A stretch of 63,119 nucleotides of DNA, the filler included, from Pelomyxa schiedti (taxonomy: Eukaryota; Protista; Evosea), in NCBI GenBank assembly GCA_020536535.1. It is 9 parts of 9 records of this genome, joined end to end, with 100 filler letters (N's around TTAATTAATTAA, not from the genome) between each part and the next. Parts side by side here need not be neighbours in the genome. Positions count along the whole stretch, not along the records: positions 1 to 19,134 come from JAHLWZ010000569.1; 8 more parts are not named here. One strand, written 5' to 3'. Of the stretch, positions 1,398 to 19,134 are shown in pieces; position 1 is the first letter of the stretch; each line of letters begins with the position of its first letter. The notes under the pieces were generated by a model. That model saw only the letters and a program-made list of their open reading frames with translations. It was not told the DNA's origin and searched no databases. The position numbers were made by a program, and so were the translations under genes.

Positions 1398-3573
1398 ATG
1401 GCCGACGCAACCCCACTTCCTGCTGGATGGAGCGAAAGAGTGGACACTACCTCTGGGAAGAAATACTACGCAAACTTGATCACAAGGGCTTCTCAATGGG
1501 ATAGGCCCACCGTTCCCGCTGCGTCGCTCGCCACCCCGCAGCAAATCGCCGCTTACGAGTTGGCTCAAAAGCAGGCCGCAGCCCCCGTTACTACAATTAC
1601 TACTAATACAGGCGCTGTGCAACCCGTCGCTACAACAACAACGCAGCCCCAGGTGGCGAACACTGCTGTACAACCTACGCAAACAACTACTCCGGTTGTA
1701 GCTGCGGCCAATCCTGCTCAGGAGCCCCTTCCCGAGGGCTGGGAGGAGAGGAAAGACCCAACCTCCGGCCGTGTGTATTTTGCAAACTTGGTTACACGTA
1801 CCTCTACCTGGGAGAGGCCCAAGTTGCCTGCGGCTGCGTTTGCCCCAGCTGCCAATACTCCTGCTGCAACTCCAACTGCACAACCAGTTGTTGTAACTGC
1901 AAACCCCGCCTCTACAGTTGCGACAAACCCCGCAACAACCCCAGTCACTCCCGCCGCTACACCAGTTGCTACGGCAACAGTCACTCCCACAGTAGCAGCT
2001 ACTCAACCTGCGACCGCTACACCAGTGGCCACCCAACCACAACCAGCTGCCCAAACACCCGCCACACCTACACCCGCCCCAGCAGCAACGGTAAGCCTCC
2101 TATTCTACCACTTCACGTTTACTAATTCGTGTAGAATCCCCTGGAACCTCCTCCTTGTGGATTATGTCATAAGACATCCCGAATACCCATGGAGTGCCCT
2201 AACTGCAAAGGAGTCGCTTGCAAGTAAAAATTGTACAAAATACCTTATACACTCTTATTTGTTTCAGAGAATGTATTGAGCCTCTAGCCTCCTCCGAATG
2301 CCCACTCTGTCATAAGCCTGTTACTGTTGCCCAATTGAAGGACAAAATGCCACCGAACTTCGAGGAGCGCTTCGATGCTACATCACAACGAGTAAGCAAT
2401 AATTTTCTCACTCACGCCTTCTAACCTTGTTTCAGATTTACTTTGTAAATGTTGTTTCCAGAACCTCTCAGTGGGATAGGCCTAAATACCGTATGTGCTA
2501 ACATCCTCTATTTTAAGTTGACTCCACGTAGCTGCGCCTGCGTCCGCTCCTGCACCCACGCCTGCTCCAGTGCCTGCTGCCACTGTAACTGTTGTACAAA
2601 CCACCTCGACACCAGCCACACAACCTACAGCAACACCTACCCCGACACAAAATCCCACTCCAGTCAATACAACTCCCGCTGCCACAGTCAGCACTGCCCC
2701 CACAACTACTCCTGCAACTTCTACCCCAACTCCAGGCGCAACAACAAGCACACCAACCCCAACTCCAAATCCTACTACACCAACTCCGAATCCATCTGCA
2801 CCAGGTGGCGGCCCTGTGGCGGGCACCAACCCTAACTCCAGTGTCAGACCTCTCAAGGTACCTTGGCACGAGCTTTAGGCAAAAACACTAACCCTTTTGT
2901 AGTTTGTGACTGTTGGTGATGGCGCTGTAGGAAAGGTTTCCTCTCCATTTTACCACCCAGTGTTCTAATTCTGTTCAGACTTGCCTGCTAATTTCTTATA
3001 CTGCCAATGCCTTCCCTGAAGAATACGTGCCAACTGTGTTCGATAACTATTCATGCAACGTCATGTTTGAGAGCAAAGGCTACAACCTTGGGCTGTGGGA
3101 CACAGCCGGACAAGAGGAATACGATCGACTCAGGCCTCTCAGCTACCCACAGACTGACTGCTTCTTCTTGTGCTATAGCATTGTTTCTCCTGCATCTCTT
3201 GACAACTGTCGCGAGAAGTGGAATCCAGAAATCACTCATCACTGCCCAGAAGCAAGAACAATTCTGGTCGGACTCAAGAAGGATCTTCGCAATGACAGCG
3301 GCCTCGTTGCCAGCTTGGCCGAGAAGAAACAACACCCAGTGACCACCGATGAAGGTGCCAAGATGGCCAAAGAACTCGGCTGCGTCAAGCACCACGGTAC
3401 CGCTTTACCTTTTCCAATTACCCTCTGCTCGTAACTAACAACTACCTACAGAGTGCAGTGCCAGGACACAGGAAGGACTTGTGGCCCTGTTCCATGAAGC
3501 CATTAAGGTCTGCCTCTCTCCAGCTACCAAGCAATCAAGTGGCAAGAAGAAAGGAGGTTGTTGCCTGTTGTAA
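1398..3573 (+). CDS. WW-WW-RING-WW-(Pro/Thr linker)-Rac/Rho GTPase fusion with CAAX box, multi-exon
   Basis: WW1 [19 protein letters not shown] and WW2 [18 protein letters not shown]. Spliced C8 RING CGLC-x9-CPNC-x4-CKEC-x8-CPLC (2135-2330). WW3 [21 protein letters not shown]. GTPase motifs [42 protein letters not shown], ending GGCCLL* at 3573. All introns read as GT-AG in compatible phase. Confidence 0.88.
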
Positions 3574-3807: not shown

Positions 3808-6079
3808 ATGCGTGTAGACCGACACGTAGCAGTTGTTGCCAATTGCGTAGTCACACTGGTGCTACTCGTAAGCTGGTGTAACTGCTCTTCGTCATCTTCA
3901 TTCTCTGAGAGTACTGCAAGTGTTGTCGGCAGCCCTAGCACAAGTAGCAGTGTTGAGAGTTACTTCAGTGATTCTCACAGTCACAGCACAAGCGGCGGTA
4001 GCGGTGGCAGTGGCAGTAGTGGTGATTCTGGATCATGGGAATCGAGGGGACAATCACACAGCCAGCCAGTTGGGATTGTGAGTTCGTCGCCAACGTGGGG
4101 GGATGGTGTGAGTGGAAGCGGAAGTGAACAATCGTCAGCATCATTATTATCATCGTCATCGTCACTATCAAAGGCACCATTGTCAGGTAGCAGCGGCTCT
4201 GACGAGGGTGCTGTGTGGAAGAAGGCTGAGGCTGAGGCCATCTGTGACCTGTACAACTCGTTGAAGCCCTGGATATGGCTGGCCGATCCTTGCGTGGAAT
4301 ATCCTGATCAAATACCGTACAACGAGACTATATTTCGGGGACTAGAGTGGGATCCCGAAGGTCACATCACTTACATGTGCTGGTTTCCAAAACTCTGCTC
4401 CTTTTTGCGCACAGCTTCTTTATTGACTCTCTACAGAGGGCTGGACACCTTTGCTTCACAACAGGGAACTATTCCCGAGACATTGGGAAATATCACTCTC
4501 CTTTCTACCATGTACACCTGTCTTTTTTTTTTTTTTTTATCATTCCTTCCTCACTCTGCACTTACAGCAAGCTTGGATTCAATCGTATGAATGGAACCAT
4601 TCCACAATCTTTAACGAAGCTGACCCTGTTATACCAATTGTTGACCAACCAGCGATAATCTTTCAATATTAATATCGAATCAAGGAGTATTTTTAGCAAT
4701 GAACTCACGGGAGAACTTCNNNNNNNNNNNNNNNNNNNNNNNNNNNNNNNNNNNNNNNNNNNNNNNNNNNNNNNNNNNNNNNNNNNNNNNNNNNNNNNNN
4801 NNNNNNNNNNNNNNNNNNNTAGTAGTAAATACAGGTTACTAGTGCCGGACAAACCCCCACCCCACCCCATGCGCACACACCTGTCCACATAAATCAATTC
4901 CATGGAGTTATCAACCCCCAACTGCACCACCACCCCCCCCCCACAACAGGTTGCTGACTGACAATTTGTTCAGTGGACCCTTGCCCAGCTTTCCTTCAAC
5001 TGACATAATGACTGTGTAAGCCACGTTTCCCTCACCGTTTTATTGTTTCTTGTTTTTGCTTTGGTTATTTATAATTTAACACCGAAAAAGAGATCTCTCA
5101 TTCAATCAGATCAATGGAACAATTCCAGCATGCTTCTTCAACTCCACATCCTTGCGGAAACTGTGCATTCATTGTTTTCCACTTAAAAACACTAATAATG
5201 GCACTTCACAAGGAATTTGCAGCATAACATGTTGATTGGTCCACTGCCGGATCTTGGTTCTCAGCCGTGTAACCTTGGGACACTGTTGTGATTCCTTCTT
5301 TTTCTGTTTTGTTGTTTTCTCATGCAAACACACCACATCAGTGATGTGTCATCAAACCTCATTTCCGGAGAGATTCCAGTTTATCTGCTTGCAAGTTCCA
5401 AACTTTCCTCCCTGTACTACTCATTCTCATTGCGCACTTTTTTCTTCTTATAATTTCATATATATTGCGGGCTTCCCCAATCAATAATGATCCCTTCCAT
5501 TTTTTATTTAGAAATATGAGCAACAATCTTCTGGAAGGAACCATTGATGGATATGAATCTTATTCTTACTACACCTACTGCTTGTATGAGCTTCTTTCCT
5601 GAATCCAATGTGTCACCTAACCCCAAACAGTGACCTGAGCAACAACTTTCTGCATGGGACTATTCCACAAACCCTCACTGAAAAGGAAATCACGGTTTGG
5701 TGTGCCCCATTTCCCCCGATTGATTTTGCTTCAATTCACCTTAACCCAACAAATCTTGAATCCTGAGACAGAAACGTAACCATAACTACAAACCAGCAAT
5801 CTTGGTAACAATTGCTTTGAATGTGGACGTGGGAACAGTTCCAACGTCACTGCTTGTGGGTGCAACAACACAAGGCCCCAAGAACAGTGTCAGAATCCAC
5901 AATCACCCTCCTCCTCACTACCTTCGTCAGAGGCATCATCACCACAAGTGCATTCCTCTTCCCAGGAACCACTGGGCAGCATAAGTACAAGCAGTGCCAG
6001 TTGTTGCTATGGGTGCAACAATCTCGTTTCAGGTTTGTTGCTCCTGACTATGATACAAGTGCTACTACTGAGTGGTTGA
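3808..6079 (+). CDS. Secreted or GPI-anchored plant-type LRR surface protein, copy 1 (interrupted by gap 4720-4819)
   Basis: N-terminal hydrophobic signal and Ser/Gly tract. Cap EAEAICDLY..W..DPC. Exons of about 72 nt encoding LxxLxxLxLxxNxxxGxIP (QGTIPETLGNITLL, NRMNGTIPQSL, NQINGTIP). Cys-rich cap, Ser stalk, hydrophobic C-terminus LVSGLLLLTMIQVLLLSG*. Confidence 0.8.
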
Positions 6080-6382
6080 CGGTACCACCAAAGTCCAAGA
6101 AAAGAATGAAGTTTTTTTTCCTTATCCCAATGAAAACATGTCCAAAGGGGGCTCCATAAAGGACGTTTTCTTCTTTGTTGGGGGAGGTAGTGAGGACCCT
6201 CGCACAAACATAAACAACCAGCAAATGAAAAATAAAAATCCTTTCCCACAATTGAGCTCCCCGATCATTGGTGAGAATAAAAGAAGTCTCGAAGCCGAGA
6301 AAGCAATTCTCTTCGCGATTGCAAATATTGGGAGCCAGACTGGTCTTCATGCTCCACCACAACTCAAAGTAACATGCACTGG

Positions 6383-6535
6383 GAGCAACAGTTGATGGTG
6401 TGAATGATGGCTAGTTGTCCACATCATGTAAAAGGGGTTGTTACCATTAACTGCCATTTAGAGACATTCAGCACCTGCAACCAATCTGATGACAATGTAA
6501 CAACTAGCCATCATTCACACCATCAACTGTTGCTC
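6383..6535. repeat. Perfect 36-bp inverted repeat with 81-nt spacer (hairpin or MITE-like)
   Basis: gagcaacagttgatggtgtgaatgatggctagttgt (6383-6418) is the exact reverse complement of 6500-6535. Confidence 0.95.
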
Positions 6536-6567
6536 TTTTGGGGGTGAAAGAAAGGCCAATGATTCAT

Positions 6568-9382
6568 TTATGTCTCGGCTTCGATAAAAAAAAACTTTTT
6601 ATTCAATCGAATGTCATGAAAAACCAAATTGTGGGAAACCGAAACTTTTGCTGGTGGATACTTGCGAATGCAGCTGTGTCTCTTCTTAGTCCGCTTATGA
6701 TTGAGACTGCCATCAAGGGTTGGCCCTGGTTGAGCTGGAGGTGGCTCACGCTCAGTAATCCATGGCGATTGCAGCAATTTCTGCTTGAACTCCTGGGCAC
6801 TTGTCTGATCAGGGTGAGTGAGCATCAAGCACACACCCACCACCCCTGGTGAAAAATTCTTTCAGCTGGTGCTGTGCAGCTGGAAAAGGGCAGACTTTTG
6901 CAACCCAGGAAAATGGAGACCACAGATACGATTCTGGTTTCCCGTCCTTTGTCTTTTGTGATTTCTTGCACCACATCCATCACTTCCTTGATTTCCGGTG
7001 TTGTATCATCGGGTTTGATGCTCACAATGGACTGGGCACAGTGGGTTGGTGTCTCCACGATTGCTTTTTCGAAGATTGGTTGAAGTTGCATGAAGGTGTC
7101 GAGGAAAGAAAAGCTGCTTGCATTTCCGTCAGCTGGGCATTTCATGGAAGGGATCGCAATTGGCTTGACACCACCACCGCCAGACTGTTGTTGGAAAGAA
7201 GAACACAATCTCTTGCCCAGAGCAATGCTGTTGGAAAGCACATAAAATTTATTCCTGGACTCTGTCACCGCATCTTGCAAAACTTTACTCTGTGTGTGAA
7301 ACATAGAAACAGAGGCAGAAGTACAAACCTTTGATGTGGCAATTTTCTCGAGATTGACTTGGCAGACCCTCAGGTTCTCCATGGCGGACTTCACAGATTG
7401 TTGAACTCCGGTCTCCATGGCGCTGTTGCACTGGCTCACTTGCACTTGCAGCTCCTTCAGTTGCAATTCGGCATTTGATTTCACCTCGAGCACCTCAGTG
7501 CATTGCTTGATGAGTGCGTCGAGTATTCCTTTCAGTGATGCCCACAGTCTCTTTTCAGCAACAGGGAGGTGTTCCTGGTGAGGAGAGCTCGGCAGTCATT
7601 GCGGACAATGCCTGAATAAATCCATGCTTGTTTATCACAGAGAATAATCCCCAATCGAAACTGTCCTGTGTTCCAGAACATCCCCATTGCTCTGGGTGCA
7701 AGATGGTTTTCGGGAAAGCGATTGCGTGAGAGGGTGGCAACACTGGCTCCAAATGGGCTTGCACTGTCATGTTGGAAAGTGCCTGACGTCACATGTGAAT
7801 TAATTTGTTGAATCAGGGATGCACAAACTGTGAGATGGTCCTTGATTTGCTTTTTCACGAGAAGTGCCATTGGGTCTGCCTCAAGCTCACGCAGTATGAC
7901 TTCGCAGTATCGCACACTTTCGTCAATGCTTGAAACAAGCCCTTGGAGTTGAGTCTGCTGTTCTCCGACTTCAGCCACGGCAGAGGGAGCACATCTTGAG
8001 ATCTTCTTCTCTCTCTTGAGAGGACAACCTGAGCGAAGAAAACTCCCTTTCGACTTGTTCTGACATCAGTTTGATGTGCTTCAGAGGGAAAGAAGTGACA
8101 ATGAGCTGCACAGACAATTGTTTTTGCAGAGAGGTACCGTACCAATTCAGAGTCATCACTGATCGACTTGAGGTGGACAATTGCTGAATCAAGCCTGCTT
8201 TTGCACAGATTCAAAGAGGTGCAAAGTTTGCTCAATTCCTTCCTGGCTGACTGAATCACATGTTTCACAGTGAAGAATTCGTGACTCTATTTGGGAAGGG
8301 TAAGTTTGCCTGTGCCTCAATACTTTTGGTGGGAGTGTGCAATGAGAGTAAGTACTCTGTGAAAATTAATTTGACATGATGAAATGAACGAGTCACAGGA
8401 TGTGCAATATAACTTCGCTTTTCGGCCGTCATGAATGCACTTGAATGATCTTTTTGCAGTCGTTTTTTTCTAATTACTGCTCAGTATTGGGGAACCAGAA
8501 TGCTTCAGAAGTACTCTTTCCGCAGGAGCGTGATCATGGAAGACTTCATGGAGAAAATCAGAGCAGCTTTTGCACAGGCTTTTATCACACTGGGGCCAAA
8601 ACACAACAGCCAGGAGCGTGCATCCCTTTTTAGCTTATTTTTATGGTCAGCAAATCCCAAAAATACCGCTTCAGTCACACCACAATTCACAGGGGTTGCA
8701 ACGGTTTCCAGGTTTTCAGAAACAGCAAGTGGATCAATTTTGAGCACACTTTCCAGCACCTTCACCAAGTAGCCACTTTGGGCATCACCCCCACCACCCA
8801 GCGACAACAGCCCTGATTCTTCTGGCGACGAATTCTCAACCTCCAACATCCCTGCCAAGCTGATCACTGGGAATCGTGAGCCACACACTGGGCACACCAC
8901 CGCCCATGTCACCGACACCGCACCCCCGCCACTTGTTGTCATTGCTGCTGCTGTTCTGGGGTTGCTGTCAGTCATGGGCACTTGTGCGTCAACTGCGGCC
9001 GTTGCACAGCCAACACCACCACGAGCGACGGGTCCGCTGTTGGCGTCGGCTGCTGTGTGTTGTTGTCCGCGGAGGCGGTTGGTGACACAGATGCAATCGG
9101 GACAAGCTTGATGCATCCCAGGTTCACTCCGTGCAAGCACGGCAACAGCCTGTGTGGTGCACCGTGCGTGTGTTTCATGTTGGTGAGGTATATTTTGACA
9201 ACACAACGCAACACACACAGACACGCGGACAGACACACAGACCTTGGGTCAGAATAAGGCATGGAGCAACATGGACATGTTGTCCTCCTGCCCCGATTGT
9301 TGTGGTTGTTGTGGTTGTTGTTGTTGCTGTTGCTGTTGCTGCTTGTCACGCTTGTTGTTCCGCCTGTTGCTCCTGCGTCCAT
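6568..9382 (-). CDS. TRIM/RBCC-like protein: RING, two B-boxes, coiled coil; 3' end approximate
   Basis: CPCCSMPYSDPR|LLPCLH..GC..CPVC RING. GCTLLAVVFWPQCDKSLCKSCSDFLH..H B-box. KCIHDGRKAKLYCTSCDSFI B-box. Long heptad-rich exons at 6825-8270. Some junctions unresolved. Confidence 0.62.
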
Positions 9383-9688
9383 TCTTCTTCAAACAAACCA
9401 CCACGATTGGAATGGCCCGGTTGGTTGGACTTTTTGATTGACTTTGGCTCAGACCAATGTGTCTCTTGCACAAATGCTCAGGTAAGTTATCACTCAAACT
9501 GTGTTGCTCAGCTTGCTACTGGTAATCTAAATCCAGCCTCGTCGAAAGTGGCTTCTGGGCTGCGGTGCCAAATTGGATTTTGATAGGAGGTGCAGGCAAG
9601 TTTTAGACTGCCATTGCTTGTGCCATAACATGCATGGTACAAAGAGACTCCCTTTTTTTTTTTTTTGACTTTTTAGCGACCAATCGAC

Positions 9689-12600
9689 TTGAAGGGCGCT
9701 GAAACCTCCACTCCGAACAGTCTCTTGGACCAAGTTTTCAGCAATTCCATCGCTAATCTTGGGAGGGTGTGTGCCGAGCTTGCGAGTCCACAGTGTACTT
9801 GTCGTCACCTGTGCCTTGAAAGCAAAATTGGAAGCGAGGGAGCAACAATCATCGCGAAAGCACTCGAATCAAACAAGTCACTCGTGTGTCTGAATCTCAG
9901 AGGCACGTGCCTTTATCCATTGTGCTCTTTCTCAATTCTCAAACGATGGTTGACTCCACTCAGACAACAAAATTGGGAGCGAGGGAGCAACAATCATCGC
10001 GAGAGCACTCCAATCGAACAAGTCACTCGTATCTCTGGAAATAAGCAGTGTGTGCCCATTGTGTTCTCTCTAATTCTCAAATGATGGGTTGCCTCTGCAA
10101 AACAAAATCACCCAGACAACGAAATTGGGAGTGAGGGAGCAACAAGCATTGCGAGAGCACTCGCGTTGAACAAGTCACTCGTGTCACTGAATATATCATG
10201 TGTATTCCCATTGTGCTCTCTCAAAAATCTCAAATGATGATTGACTCTAAAGAAATCATCCAGACAACGAAATTGGGAGTGAAGGTGCAACAAGCATCGC
10301 GAGAGCACTTGAATTGAACAAGTCACTCGTATCTCTGTATATAAGAAGTGCGTTCCCGTCGTCCCATCGAGTTCTCACAATTCTGAAATGATGATTGACC
10401 TTCCAAAACAAAATCACCCAGATAACGAAATTGGGAGTGAAGGCGCAACAAGCATCGCGAGAGCACTCGAATCGAACAAGTCACTCGTGTCTCTGGATAT
10501 GTCATGTGTGTCCCCATTGTGTTCTCTATTAATACTCAAATGATGATTGACTCACCGAAACGAAATCACTCAGCCAATGGAATTGGGAGCGAGGGAACAA
10601 CAAGCATCGTGAGAGCACTCCAATCGAACAAGTCACTGATGTCCTTGAATCTCCATCGTGCTCTCTCAAAATTCTCAAATGATGATTGACTCTGAAAAAA
10701 TACAATCACTCAGGCAACGCAATTGGGCGTGAAGGTGCGACAATCATCGCGAGAGCACTCGAATCGAACAAGTCACTCGTGTCTCTGGAAATATCATGTG
10801 TGTCCCCTTTGGCTCTCTCAATTCTCAAATGATGATTGACCCTCCAAAACGAACTCCTCAGCCAATGGAATTGGGAGTGAGGGAGCAACAATCATCGCGA
10901 AAGCACTCGAATCGAACAAGTCACTCGTGTATCTGAATCTCCATAGTATGTGCCTTCGTTCCATTGCGCTCTCTCTCAATTCTCAAATGATGGGTTGACT
11001 CTTCACCCAGACAACGAAATTGGGAGCGAAGGTGCAACAAGCATCGCGAGAGCACTCGAATCGAACAGGTCACTCATGTCCCTGGATATGTCAGGTGTGT
11101 TCCCATTGTGCTCTCTCACACAATTCTCGAATGATGGGTTGACTCTGCAAAACACAATCACTCAGACAACACCATTGGGAGTGAAGGTGCAACAAACATC
11201 ACAAGAGCACTCGAATCGAACAAGTCACTCGTGTCTCCGAATCTAGGAGGTGTGTCTCATTGTTCCATTGTACTCTCAAAGTGGTGACCCTTCATTCACA
11301 CAGAGATACTGTTCTTTTGGTTTACGTGGGTGATTCATCCCACTTTGGGTGCTTCTCTTCTGGTCTTTCTGCAACCTCAAACTTCTGCATTTTCGTGCCC
11401 TACTGTTGGTGGCACCAAATACCCTCTAAACTCGGACATTTGGCTTATCTCAGGAGGCCCAAAAATACACTCTCTGATGCCCTCTTTGAAATTCCCATTG
11501 AGATTCTCGATTCGCGGAATCGCCCTCCCAGTTACGATATCCATATTCCACTATTCTATTGAATCTTCCCCTCCATTTCTCTGACAAAAAGGGTCACACC
11601 CCACTGCAATGGGACTTGCCACAGGCAAAGAATACTTTGTGAATAACTTCAAAAACTCACCTATAAATTCTGTATGGACTCGATCGGTGATGCCAGCAAC
11701 ACGAGCCAAAGAAATTCCTGTAACTAGCACACAAACAGCCAGCCCGTCTTTGTACTCTCCAAATTTATCACTCCCGTTTGCCCAACGGTCATCAGCAGCA
11801 CGCAAACTGGACACTCCTGCACAAACACCTGAAACACTCACAAGTGCGGCAACAGCAACACCATTTCAAATTCAAACAGCCAACGCAGACCAAACGTGTT
11901 TCTGGCTTGAATCTATTGGTGTGGACGATGACTGCTTGAAAATCATTAGAGCAAACAAACTGAGAGGAAAAACACTTGCCAATTGCTCCGTTCAACAATT
12001 GTGTGACCTTGGCCTCGTTTTTGGTGATGCAAAATTCATTGTCGAGGAAGTCAAAGCACATTTATCAAGTCAAGAGCAATCGTCATGCAGTTCGCTCAAG
12101 TCGACAGGTGCAAAAATCCTCACTTCTCTATGGTTTTTCTCACATTTTTTCAGTGGGAGCAGAATCTCTTTTCAGTGCTGAGATGAATTACAAGTGCTTT
12201 GCGTTTGTTGTTGGAAATCAATCTTATGGGAAGCGTTCACTCGAAAACGCCATTCATGATTCAGAATCAATTTGTGAGGTATCTTCCATTTTCCCAACAA
12301 ATTCTGCTTTTTACATTGAATACAATTGCAGTTCTTGAAGAAAAGATGTCAATTTGAAGTGGTCCGCCACACGAACATCCCAAATCTCGAAGTATTCGAT
12401 AGCCACTTTCGAAAATTCAAAGAAACACTGATCAAGCAAAAAATGGCAGGAAACAAGGTTTGATTTGGTCTCTTTCCCTTGTAGAATTTTGGGAATTGAC
12501 AGGCATCAGGTTGCAAGCATATTTTATTTTGCAGGACATGGAAGGCAGGTGGATGGACACAACTTCCTGCTGATGACTGACGACGAGATTGCTTTCGAGG

Positions 12601-13210
12601 AGACCAGTTACGACCTCATGGAGCTCAAAGCACCTATGCTTGGCACCGTGATTGATGGAATGAAGAGATACTCTGACCTGACAATCGGCATTCTTGATGC
12701 TTGCCGCCAATCCAATGACAAGGGTGGCTCCAAGGTGACTATAAGCTCTTTCATTCTTATTCAGGACATTGGTCTTCTCAAATTGGCAGATACGTGGATC
12801 CGAACAACCAACGGAACTCCAATTGACGAAAGAAGACTTCCGTGCCGGGTGCATTTTGATTTATCCAACAAGCCCAGGTTTTTTCCCTCCTTTGGGTTTT
12901 CCCTGAATTCAACCTGTCTCGCTTCTTCGCATCTGAAACGCACAGGGAGGACAACACAGGATGTTTGCACCCTCCCAAACAGGCGGAACCATGGATTCTT
13001 CACTGGTTGCTTCCTCGAAGGTTGCTTTGCCTCCATTTCCAACCCCCGCTTTCTTACATCACACGCGTTCCAGTTGTTGAGAATGCGGAACCCGGCACAT
13101 CGTGGAACGATCTGGAGTCCGCCATTATTCAGATTGTACAGAGGGAATCTCATGACGAACAGACACCATGGATCTCAAAGAGCTCTGGGCTTCGCTTTGC
13201 TCTCTTCTAG
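9689..13210 (+). CDS. Ribonuclease-inhibitor-type LRR array, SAM domain and caspase-like (C14) peptidase; start uncertain, single-transcript linkage inferred
   Basis: Ten 28-aa repeats NxIGSEGATxIARALESNKSLxxLxL. SAM-like QTCFWLESIGVDDDCLKIIRANKLRGKTL..QLCDLGLVFGDAKFI. C14 motifs AFVVGNQSY..LENAIHD, FYFAGHG (His at 12537), ILDACR (Cys at 12702), IYPTSPG, GFFT, EQTPW; stop at 13210. Confidence 0.75.
9820..11300 (+). repeat. Tandem exon+intron unit of about 150 bp, ten copies (84-nt phase-1 LRR exons)
   Basis: Examples: exon 9964-10047 and exon 11166-11249. The introns also share sequence (ccattgtgctctctc..ttctcaaatgatg..ttgac..cag). Confidence 0.92.
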
Positions 13211-16102: not shown

Positions 16103-17788
16103 ATCAGGTAGAAAAAAACTTTCATCAGTTGCACTTTCACCACCCCGAAGTTCGTTGTTCTTCTGTCTGGGAGCAATTTGGCCCATTCACCACCAACAGG
16201 ACACAGAGCACACCTTGGGTGTTAACTCCCTCAGTTACGATACTGCCAACAAGAGACTTTTTTCTCAGTCTTTTACTCTCAACATTCCAAAAAAAACTGG
16301 AAACGCGGAACCAACGGCCAACGGACGCTCTTTTGAGTGACACACAATGGCACTGACAGTGGGAACTGCTGCGTCTTCATCGAAAACACCCCCCTCGACG
16401 GTGGATGCTGCTGCAGCACCAAATGGTTGAGCACGACAACAACCACCGCGAATACGAAATGTGGAGCACGAACGACAACAGCGTAAAGGCGAGGCCACTC
16501 AAGTACTTGGCAAAAAAAGCAAGGCAACAAAGCTGGTGGTGGCCGCAATAAAATGGGTAAGAAGGAAAAGCTTGGGGCGGGCGAGGGCGCCGCGTCGTGG
16601 GTGTCGGTGTCGGTGGTTGTGGTGATATACTACTATATGGCCGAGCCACTGGCTGAGGCGCACCTCAGGGACCCCGCAAAAGGGGAAGAGAGTCAGAGTT
16701 CCAGTCGCTGCAGACGGGGAGGGACATGGCGCAAAGCAAGACGGAGAGTCCCCAGCCAAATACCCTCCATCGGGAACACACCCTCTCTTCTGGGCGACTT
16801 ACTTCAAGAGAGAACAAGTTGCAATGCAGCTTTCTTCACTTGGGGTTGATCCCAACCATCGAATGTTACAGCTGTAGCTAGACACAACATAAACCACCCA
16901 ATTAACCCCGTGGTGGTCGCAGTGATGAACAATCAAAAGGAATTAATTGGTTGATCCAATGGCGAAACACCGTGGTGGTGTTCTTCCTGCCAAAGGACAA
17001 CGTTCATGGTGGTACTTTAAGGATGAGGGGAAGTACCCTCACATCGACTGTATGTTTTGTTGAATTTGAGTTCTTTTGGTTCATTTCCTTCAGGATACTT
17101 GGAAGAATACCACATGGTTGATGTGTCTCCCTCATGTTGGGCCAAGAGCAGACACACTTCTTCGTTCATTCCATGCCTGAACTTAGGACAACAATAGAAG
17201 TATGACGGTACTCACTCGACTATTGTTCAGTTTTTAAAAGCATCGATGACGACGCAGTTCAATCTCCTGAAATTCAGCAAGTGCTGGAATTTCTTGACAT
17301 CCAATCTCATGGAAGGATTCAACATACTTCTCGTTTTTGGTTTGTTTGTTGCATTTGCCTCTCATTGTACACACAGATCGTGATACCACTGGGGATTCCT
17401 TCTCGAACACGATTTCCACTGTGTTCTGTGGATTCGTTTTGTGAACAACTTGAGCACTTCGGCATCCTAAGTACATCCCGGATACCTTGGTATTACATAC
17501 AAATCTGACCATTATCCAACAAGGTATTCAAATCTCACCTTGCTTTCAAAAGGGCAACTTGCCTTACTGACCTCAAATTTATTGAAGATGGAGTGAATGC
17601 CCGATGCACCACCAACAGGGTGGATCAACTGGGGGCGTTGCACATCAATTGCAACCAAACACAGACACTCACTCAGTCCAGTATCATGAAATGGGGTTTT
17701 GATACATCCTCCAGACATGTCCAGTGGGGGTCTGGAATGGAAAAAATGTTTTTTTTGAATTGCACATTTACGTTAAATACATAGTGGG

Positions 17789-19134
17789 CTATCCAAGCAA
17801 AGAATCACTTCCCATGATGAACAGAGCACCACCGTCACCACCTTTTCCTTCATTGCAGTCATACACATCACAACGTGCATCATTTCCACCACCACCACCA
17901 CCGAATCGGCCACCTGGTGTTCCCCTCTTCCTGTTCTCGCCTGGTGCCCCTGGTTGGCCTCCAACAGGCTTTCCTTGAAGTGTCCCAAGCCAACAGCCAC
18001 CTCCACTCCCTGCTGAGTCATAGAAGCCGTTTGTTCCACCGTCTCCTCCCCTGCCTCCATTTTGACCTGGTGTTCCTGCTTCATTTTTTTTTTTTTTATT
18101 TTGTGATTTAGTGGGTTTTGTATTGTTGTATGTTGTTGTTTTGTTTTTTTACATTGAACTGCCTCTTGTGAACTTCCACCACCAGATCCAGCACCCACAC
18201 CACCACCATCACAGCACACACTGTCACCTCGGCATGCGTTCTTTCCAGCACCACCATTGCCCCCTGTTCCTGCTGCACCACCTCCCCCACCACCTGAGGC
18301 GTGTGCTCCGCCACCTGTCCCACCTGTGAATGAGCCTGTGTTCACTGCCTTGTGTGTCCCTGGCAGAGTCACTGTACCCACCCCGCCATCTCCACCACGT
18401 TCGCTGCTGGTGGCATTGGCCCCTGTTGCATATGCTTTACCACCATCACCACCACCGCCACGTGCCAGTGCTTCACCTGATGATGTTGTCACAGTGGTGT
18501 CACCACCTTTCTTGCCCTGTTGACTCAACCTCGACCCGCCAGCACCACCCCTCCCAACAACAACAATGAACGTTTCACCCTCAGCCACTCCGAGTCCCAG
18601 AACAAATGCAGTTCCACCGCCACCACCTCCTGCTCCTCCACCATCAGGATCATGGCAGCCAGCACCACCACCAGCACCAACAACAGCAAATGACATCACA
18701 GTCACACCACATGGCACAACCACCATGTGTTCTCCTGGTCTGTCAAGGCAAACTGACAATGGGTGGAAAAGGCGAGCAGATGCAGGGTCACTGAATGGTC
18801 CAACACCACCTGGTGATGATGCTGCAACACGAAGAGGTGCCACAGAGCAACCTGGGGAGAGGCTGAAAACACACTGAAGGGCAAGCCCATGATACACCTC
18901 ACGTCGTTGTTGTTGTGCAGTTCCTTCAAGTTCAACAGCAACAGTGTATGATACAATCTTGGATCCATTTGGTGGTGGTGCTTTCCACTGCACTGAAACG
19001 GCGTCAACAGCTGTTTGTGAAGCTGTTGGAACATCAGGTTTACGTGGAAGGCCTGTGAATGTGGGTGGTTACAACACAGTATTTTTTCTCAACAAGAACT
19101 CAACTCACCCATATTTTCCTGCAATCTCGTGTTT
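17789..19134 (-). CDS. Fibronectin type III plus glycine-rich domain protein; 5' end truncated at contig end
   Basis: VQWKAPPPNGSKIVSYTV..VYHG..LRVAASSPGGVGPFS is FN3-like. PGEHMVVVPCGVTVMSFAVVGAGGGAG..GETFIVVVGRGGAGG follows. After an intron at about 18080-18170 the frame ends GKGGDGGALFIMGSDSLLG*. Confidence 0.75.

Follow-up and report, generated by a model that had tools for sequence, protein, structure and literature searches.

SAM-paracaspase genes with interchangeable heads in Pelomyxa schiedti, and an LRR-bearing member that may have been damaged recently

The window, i.e. the whole stretch of Pelomyxa schiedti DNA analysed here (63,119 nucleotides, nine joined parts), contains at 9634–13210, on the plus strand, a gene model of 19 exons and 18 spliceosomal introns, the last exon ending at 13210. 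The locus lies on contig C569. Its introns were all GT-AG and 46–74 nt long, with the exception of one GC-AG intron after exon 2. Leucine-rich repeats (LRRs), a SAM domain and a caspase-family (C14) protease follow each other on one strand in the order given by the earlier note on this DNA. The genome searched for family members comprised 52.4 Mb in 5337 contigs. Searches were carried out with exons, NCBI proteins stood in for full-length chains, and the use of joined models was confined to frame checks, dN/dS and the tree. The features of the locus were as follows.

9634–9636, plus strand: start codon ATG, a micro-exon (ATG/gt); the same ATG/gt...aag/GG layout occurs in paralogues L033, L035 and L037 and in NCBI models P0006 and P0007
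9637–9694, plus strand: phase-0 intron after the ATG micro-exon, splicing to GGC at 9695
9695–9902, plus strand: exon 2 with the N-terminal cap and the first LRR; the GC-AG intron (GAG/gcacgt) comes next; gene model compared with paralogues
9964–11249, plus strand: nine 84-nt phase-1 exons, each with one RI-type LRR, separated by introns of 54–74 nt
9964, 10116, 10264, 10422, 10574, 10714, 10862, 11011 and 11166, plus strand: starts of the 84-nt LRR exons
11304–11530, plus strand: family-specific, unclassified linker exon, 227 nt here versus 228, 231 or 261 nt in paralogues
11459–11461, plus strand: site of a 1-nt deletion seen in the alignment with six paralogues; DNA contigs of three runs cross it unchanged
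11592–12107, plus strand: last part of the linker domain, disordered stretch rich in Ser, Thr and Pro, and SAM domain (about 11861–12070), all in one exon; internal ATG at 11609
12154–13210, plus strand: paracaspase domain in six exons (12154–12278, 12332–12457, 12510–12734, 12790–12877, 12946–13020, 13074–13210)

The start had previously been placed at a TTG at 9689. The paralogues point instead to the ATG micro-exon, whose splicing to GGC at 9695 yields the N-terminus MGAETS. Loss of the start codon, with AAG replacing ATG, was rejected, as the paralogues share this AAG, which is the acceptor after the micro-exon. MGAETS fits the myristoylation consensus MGxxxS. Many family members with different heads also start with Met-Gly, and several with MGxxxS. 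The site of the GC-AG intron is GT in most paralogues; GC-AG introns make up 1.59% of the introns of the P. schiedti genome (PMC8887013). The protease part of the locus was identical to NCBI model Pelo_7147 (KAH3761032.1), the annotated product of the locus. An origin from bacterial contamination was ruled out on the basis of the 18 spliceosomal introns and of intron positions conserved in the paralogues.

Several other genes were present around the locus. It is flanked by two paralogous plus-strand genes (3796 to about 5800 and 13435 to about 16300), both of which combine a hydrophobic N-terminus and a stalk rich in Ser with LRR-like exons. Their first exons are 68% identical over 81 aa, and the genes look like surface receptors. 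The head-to-head neighbour of the locus (about 6000–9280, minus strand) has a Cys/His-rich RING-like segment and coiled-coil-like exons; the ORFs tried from it gave no Pfam match. Further away are a gene for a WW-domain protein with Thr/Pro-rich tracts (1398–2880, plus strand), one for a Rho-type small GTPase (3027–3434, plus strand) and an ORF with a fibronectin-III-like start followed by a glycine-rich domain (17773–18993, minus strand; Gly_rich_2, E = 2e-8).

The ten RI-type LRRs counted in the earlier note were confirmed, each of 28 residues, the first in the exon at 9695–9902 and the other nine in the exact 84-nt exons. Pfam LRR_6 matched the paralogue protein P0007 with E = 2.6e-35. All 54 matches to the DNA pattern of the 84-nt exon fell within LRR-SAM-paracaspase loci. 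Across the LRR loci the number of repeats ranged from 2 to about 16 and changed by whole exons. In pairwise, non-independent comparisons of 66 LRR exons, framework positions showed a pN of 0.090 and a pS of 0.352, the exposed positions of the concave strand a pN of 0.353 and a pS of 0.265, and position 2 (the residue after Asn) a pN of 0.497 and a pS of 0.175; measured against the overall pS of 0.337 the variable sites reach only about 1.0–1.5, with the two most variable ones at about 1.5 times this value. The codon split by each LRR intron encodes a residue of the exposed face, so reordering of exons creates new residues there. The pattern of substitutions is suggestive of variation driven by ligands.

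Downstream of the repeats, the linker domain had no Pfam match. Its structure model contained four low-confidence beta-strands, and its matches in the structure atlas had scores under 0.8 and were driven by the LRR end. The SAM-like domain proposed earlier was borne out. In the window copy it matched Pfam SAM_1 with E = 0.0016, which alone is below the curated cut-off, and Pfam SAM matches were found in 14 of 15 family members. A profile of the family SAM retrieved many SAM domains among solved structures (to E = 5e-8), including that of SARM1 (E = 0.002), and the SAM of a paralogue was modelled as a five-helix bundle with a pLDDT of about 95. Many SAM domains bind other partners. The full-length model had a pTM of 0.48 and no reliable packing between domains; used as a query against the structure atlas, it returned LRR proteins only.

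The C14 peptidase with intact AGHG and DACR motifs was likewise upheld: the family matched Pfam C14 with E = 2e-22, and the His-Cys dyad of the window copy is encoded at 12537 (His) and 12702 (Cys). The earlier note had left its subtype to a comparison with metacaspases, paracaspases and bacterial proteins, in which MALT1 was the best match. The predicted protease domain had the caspase-hemoglobinase fold and a pLDDT of 89.6, and Foldseek ranks 1–21 for the model were all MALT1. VIA-align Z values were 25.2 for MALT1, 22.6 for caspase-9 and 13–19.4 for metacaspases. A sequence profile, its rows mostly bacterial, gave E = 1e-31 for MALT1 versus 7e-13 for caspase-1. A search of solved structures with a single sequence found nothing, and the match to metacaspases was a weak one at the sequence level (E = 0.15). 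Asp codons at 12258, 12696 and 12960 align with D365, D462 and E500 of MALT1, the residues that anchor the P1 arginine (PMC4626109), and these three acidic S1-pocket positions were invariant or nearly so in 89 sequences. Judged by sequence and structure model, the protease is a paracaspase (C14B). No Pfam match to the death and Ig domains of MALT1-type (type 1) paracaspases was found in P0004, P0005 and P0007. The disordered loop that follows the catalytic Cys contains a nearly invariant Arg-Gly pair, which could be a site of self-cleavage.

The locus belongs to a larger family. At least 25 SAM-paracaspase cassettes were identified in the P. schiedti genome, and 25 of the 29 SAM domains of the family type lie within about 1 kb upstream of a protease catalytic exon. 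The genome-wide count of LRR-SAM-effector genes proposed by the earlier note gave LRR arrays as heads at 9 loci among these cassettes. Elsewhere the cassette follows Sel1 repeats, MORN repeats (two cases), ankyrin repeats combined either with an unknown domain or with a PARP regulatory domain, a Ras GTPase, a second caspase-like domain or, in several members, an unknown Pelomyxa domain. The Sel1 gene, one MORN gene and one ankyrin gene carry head and SAM in one unspliced ORF, so these fusions are independent of splice prediction; the Ras and PARP_reg heads are joined to the protease in NCBI models. For the LRR type, complete reading frames of 940 aa (L035) and 992 aa (L037) could be modelled, with canonical introns, both catalytic motifs and no internal stop, and NCBI models P0004, P0006 and P0007 likewise combine LRR and C14 in a single chain. 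As far as gene models go, the single LRR-SAM-paracaspase chain is real in the family. In a quick, midpoint-rooted tree all 19 Pelomyxa protease domains included formed one clade (SH-aLRT 99), in which the close LRR-type copies were a young subclade (100). Tandem copies were located on contig C721, and decaying copies include L036, L048, L050, P0091 and P0133.

The family showed some further variation. Seven members (L038, L041, L044, L045 and L050; P0012 and P0133) share a domain of about 150–250 aa upstream of the SAM or protease that has no Pfam match and may be a new sensor or adaptor domain. In L039 (P0008), the SAM-paracaspase takes the place expected for a PARP catalytic domain, following ankyrin repeats and a PARP regulatory domain, and in L042 (P0009) it follows a Ras GTPase; both heads are reminiscent of integrated bait domains. 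An assembly gap and a duplicated exon in the protease of one paralogue (L032:7051–7153) split its annotation (P0017), and this copy may be intact. There are also proteins with two caspase-like domains (P0019, P0011), one of them with dynamin-like and kinase-like parts. More distant C14 domains occur in long ORFs on contigs C511, C165, C406 and C1049.

The window copy differs from its relatives at the join between LRRs and SAM. The earlier note had reached the SAM in frame through an unusual acceptor (cagag). In the alignment of six paralogues, the conserved acceptor of the linker exon is canonical, CAG/AG at 11304, two bases before that GAG. With it the join is in frame in all six, and a conserved phase-1 intron leads into the SAM exon; in L035 and L037 the frame is open from the LRRs to the protease with the conserved splice sites. 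The frame problem arises because the linker exon of the window copy lacks 1 nt near 11460, a deletion private to this copy. With conserved splicing, translation of the window copy ends after 414 aa, before the protease. The stop lies at 11640–11642 if the following intron is spliced or at 11582–11584 if it is kept. An assembly error at 11460 was rejected, as contigs of three DNA runs span the site without gap or difference; the runs derive from one sample, the assembly's own, and their contigs keep introns and drop rare variants. The single-chain architecture claimed before is well supported for the gene family (six in-frame joins, two stop-free models and P0004, P0006 and P0007) and is doubtful for the window copy.

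Against the paralogues, the protease of the window copy had a dN/dS of 0.20–0.37, with private changes like those of the paralogues. This half still looks constrained, which means either that the lesion is recent or that the protease half remains in use. On balance we favour the reading that this locus was damaged recently and belongs to a family of one-chain sensor-SAM-paracaspase genes specific to Pelomyxa. Most likely the window copy has no full-length product. Its rescue by other splicing is a considerably less probable outcome, and an intact allele elsewhere in the population would be a surprise.

Three bypasses of the deletion were considered, all open through to the stop at 13210. A 134-nt GT-AG intron at 11320–11453 would give 783 aa with the complete LRR array attached, skipping of the linker exon 752 aa, and the GAG acceptor of the earlier note 827 aa with 51 out-of-frame codons. 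These open frames, the valid ends of all other introns and the lack of excess amino-acid change in the protease half are what one would expect of a functional copy that makes the full LRR-SAM-paracaspase chain by splicing around the deletion. We nevertheless consider such a copy unlikely. The 134-nt intron is about twice as long as the other introns of the gene (46–74 nt), and paralogues in which the exon is retained possess this donor and acceptor as well. Both this intron and exon skipping would delete most of a conserved domain, and the GAG route would swap that domain for a frame interrupted by stops in four of the six paralogues; among 106 acceptors modelled in the family none was GAG. 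The NCBI model that uses the 134-nt intron also starts at LRR 9 and looks like a patch by the predictor.

The frameshift might also split the locus usefully, into a truncated LRR decoy and a headless SAM-paracaspase translated from the ATG at 11609, which would act as a regulator or constitutive partner of the intact paralogues. This ATG does open the SAM frame, and in the degenerate L036 the SAM-protease half is likewise intact and annotated accordingly (P0018). In intact paralogues, however, the Met at 11609 corresponds to a conserved residue inside the linker domain, and neither AATAAA nor ATTAAA occurs between the LRRs and the gene end, where the earlier note had suggested looking for a poly(A) site as a sign of separate transcription. 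We regard a useful split as improbable.

The locus and its intact relatives can be compared with several known systems. Among paracaspases (MEROPS C14B), MALT1 was the best profile and structural match and shares the His-Cys dyad and Asp or Glu at all P1-Arg anchors, where the Pelomyxa proteins have Asp. Unlike MALT1, these proteins have LRR or other heads and a SAM instead of death and Ig domains, are 16–18% identical to it, and are encoded by at least 25 copies rather than one. In a search of 1.84 billion representative sequences, the nearest non-Pelomyxa relatives of the protease were bacterial caspase-family p20 proteins (Thiomargarita, Geobacteraceae, Desulfobacula, Microcystis), about 30% identical where named. 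They too are often multi-domain (TPR, GUN4), whereas the Pelomyxa genes share the positions of their spliceosomal introns and make up a long-branched clade of their own. Neither SAM nor LRR was found in the non-Pelomyxa protease matches scanned, and no other eukaryote with the SAM-paracaspase layout was found in the sequence library, whose amoebozoan coverage is uncertain. According to the literature, animals and dictyostelids acquired paracaspases sporadically from bacteria (PMC3417536).

In its layout the family is closest to SARM1 (ARM-SAM-TIR), which also combines a repeat sensor, a SAM oligomeriser and an enzyme in one chain with no NTPase (PMC7688312, PMC9780360), the SAM standing between sensor and enzyme in both. 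The Pelomyxa proteins differ in having LRR rather than ARM repeats, one SAM rather than two, and a protease rather than a TIR NADase. The likeness is one of layout and does not imply shared descent. The earlier note had drawn an analogy to an inflammasome lacking a NACHT/NB-ARC ATPase. Its structural part is well supported for the family, which has gene models of single-chain sensor-SAM-protease proteins in which no NACHT or NB-ARC was found. As an enzyme the protein compares better with MALT1, and in layout with SARM1, than with the caspase-1 inflammasome. NLRs and inflammasomes share the RI-type LRRs and a caspase-family effector whose activation is attributed to clustering (PMC11121540); the Pelomyxa proteins differ from them in lacking NACHT/NB-ARC, CARD and PYD and in carrying the protease in cis. 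NCBI names three of the paralogues NLRC3 or NOD3, names that derive from the LRR alone.

None of the 13 NACHT matches in the genome is on the contig of the locus. At least 11 of them exceed the Pfam cut-off, mostly in ORFs of about 1000–2900 aa; NACHT matches were located on contigs C682, C951, C231, C820, C185, C387, C381, C42, C424 and C790. Pelomyxa also has predicted STAND proteins, separate from the SAM-paracaspase family.

The LRR exons resemble those of Tetrahymena (PMC6564038) in having one repeat per fixed-length exon, a uniform intron phase and a junction codon shared by neighbours, and in expanding by exon duplication, with exon reordering giving new exposed residues. Those of Pelomyxa differ in being 84 nt long, in phase 1 and confined to LRR-SAM-paracaspase loci.

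By analogy, the family is best read as SARM1-like sensor-oligomeriser-protease receptors. In such a receptor, the N-terminal Gly would be myristoylated and hold the protein on a membrane, where the LRR array or other head would bind a ligand or release autoinhibition. SAM-SAM contacts would then cluster the chains, and clustering would dimerise the paracaspase, as for initiator caspases (PMC11121540). The dimer would cleave its substrates after Arg, the first of them perhaps being its own conserved R-G loop. The likeliest use of such receptors would be to watch for bacteria or bacterial products (food, symbionts, parasites), the receptor genes themselves undergoing birth-and-death turnover.

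A role in immunity, defence or symbiont control is the likeliest one, as far as we infer. P. schiedti is a free-living anaerobic amoeba with several prokaryotic endosymbionts (PMC10579272). It is conceivable, though less likely than not, that Pelomyxa built its own diversified innate-immune repertoire independently of NLRs, with the SAM-paracaspase shuffled behind exon-modular LRR arrays and captured bait domains (Ras, PARP regulatory) and policing bacterial and archaeal endosymbionts and intruders. Somewhat less probable still is that the proteases do housekeeping or developmental signalling (in membrane traffic, control of vacuoles, encystment or division of the multinucleate cell) and that the heads serve as localisation modules. 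LRR, ankyrin, MORN, Sel1 and Ras domains serve ordinary signalling too, and Ras GTPase, MORN and PARP regulatory domains are among the heads found here. The paracaspase of Dictyostelium, moreover, is tied to vacuole function rather than defence. However, the rapid gain and loss of copies, the tandems on C721, the range of LRR number and the variation of the ligand face fit recognition genes better.

No description of a SAM-paracaspase with swappable heads was found in the literature searched, and the genome paper (PMC8887013) does not mention caspases; this is apparently a paracaspase architecture undescribed before, with its expansion in a single amoeba. For further study, the intact paralogues on contigs C721 and C933 are preferable to the window copy, which is probably a damaged member, and the SAM-protease part is small enough for expression and assay. 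If the proteins work as inferred, they would represent a third way, beside NLRs and SARM1, of wiring a repeat sensor to a clustered enzyme, and would provide testable candidates for how a single cell tells a symbiont from food or a parasite.
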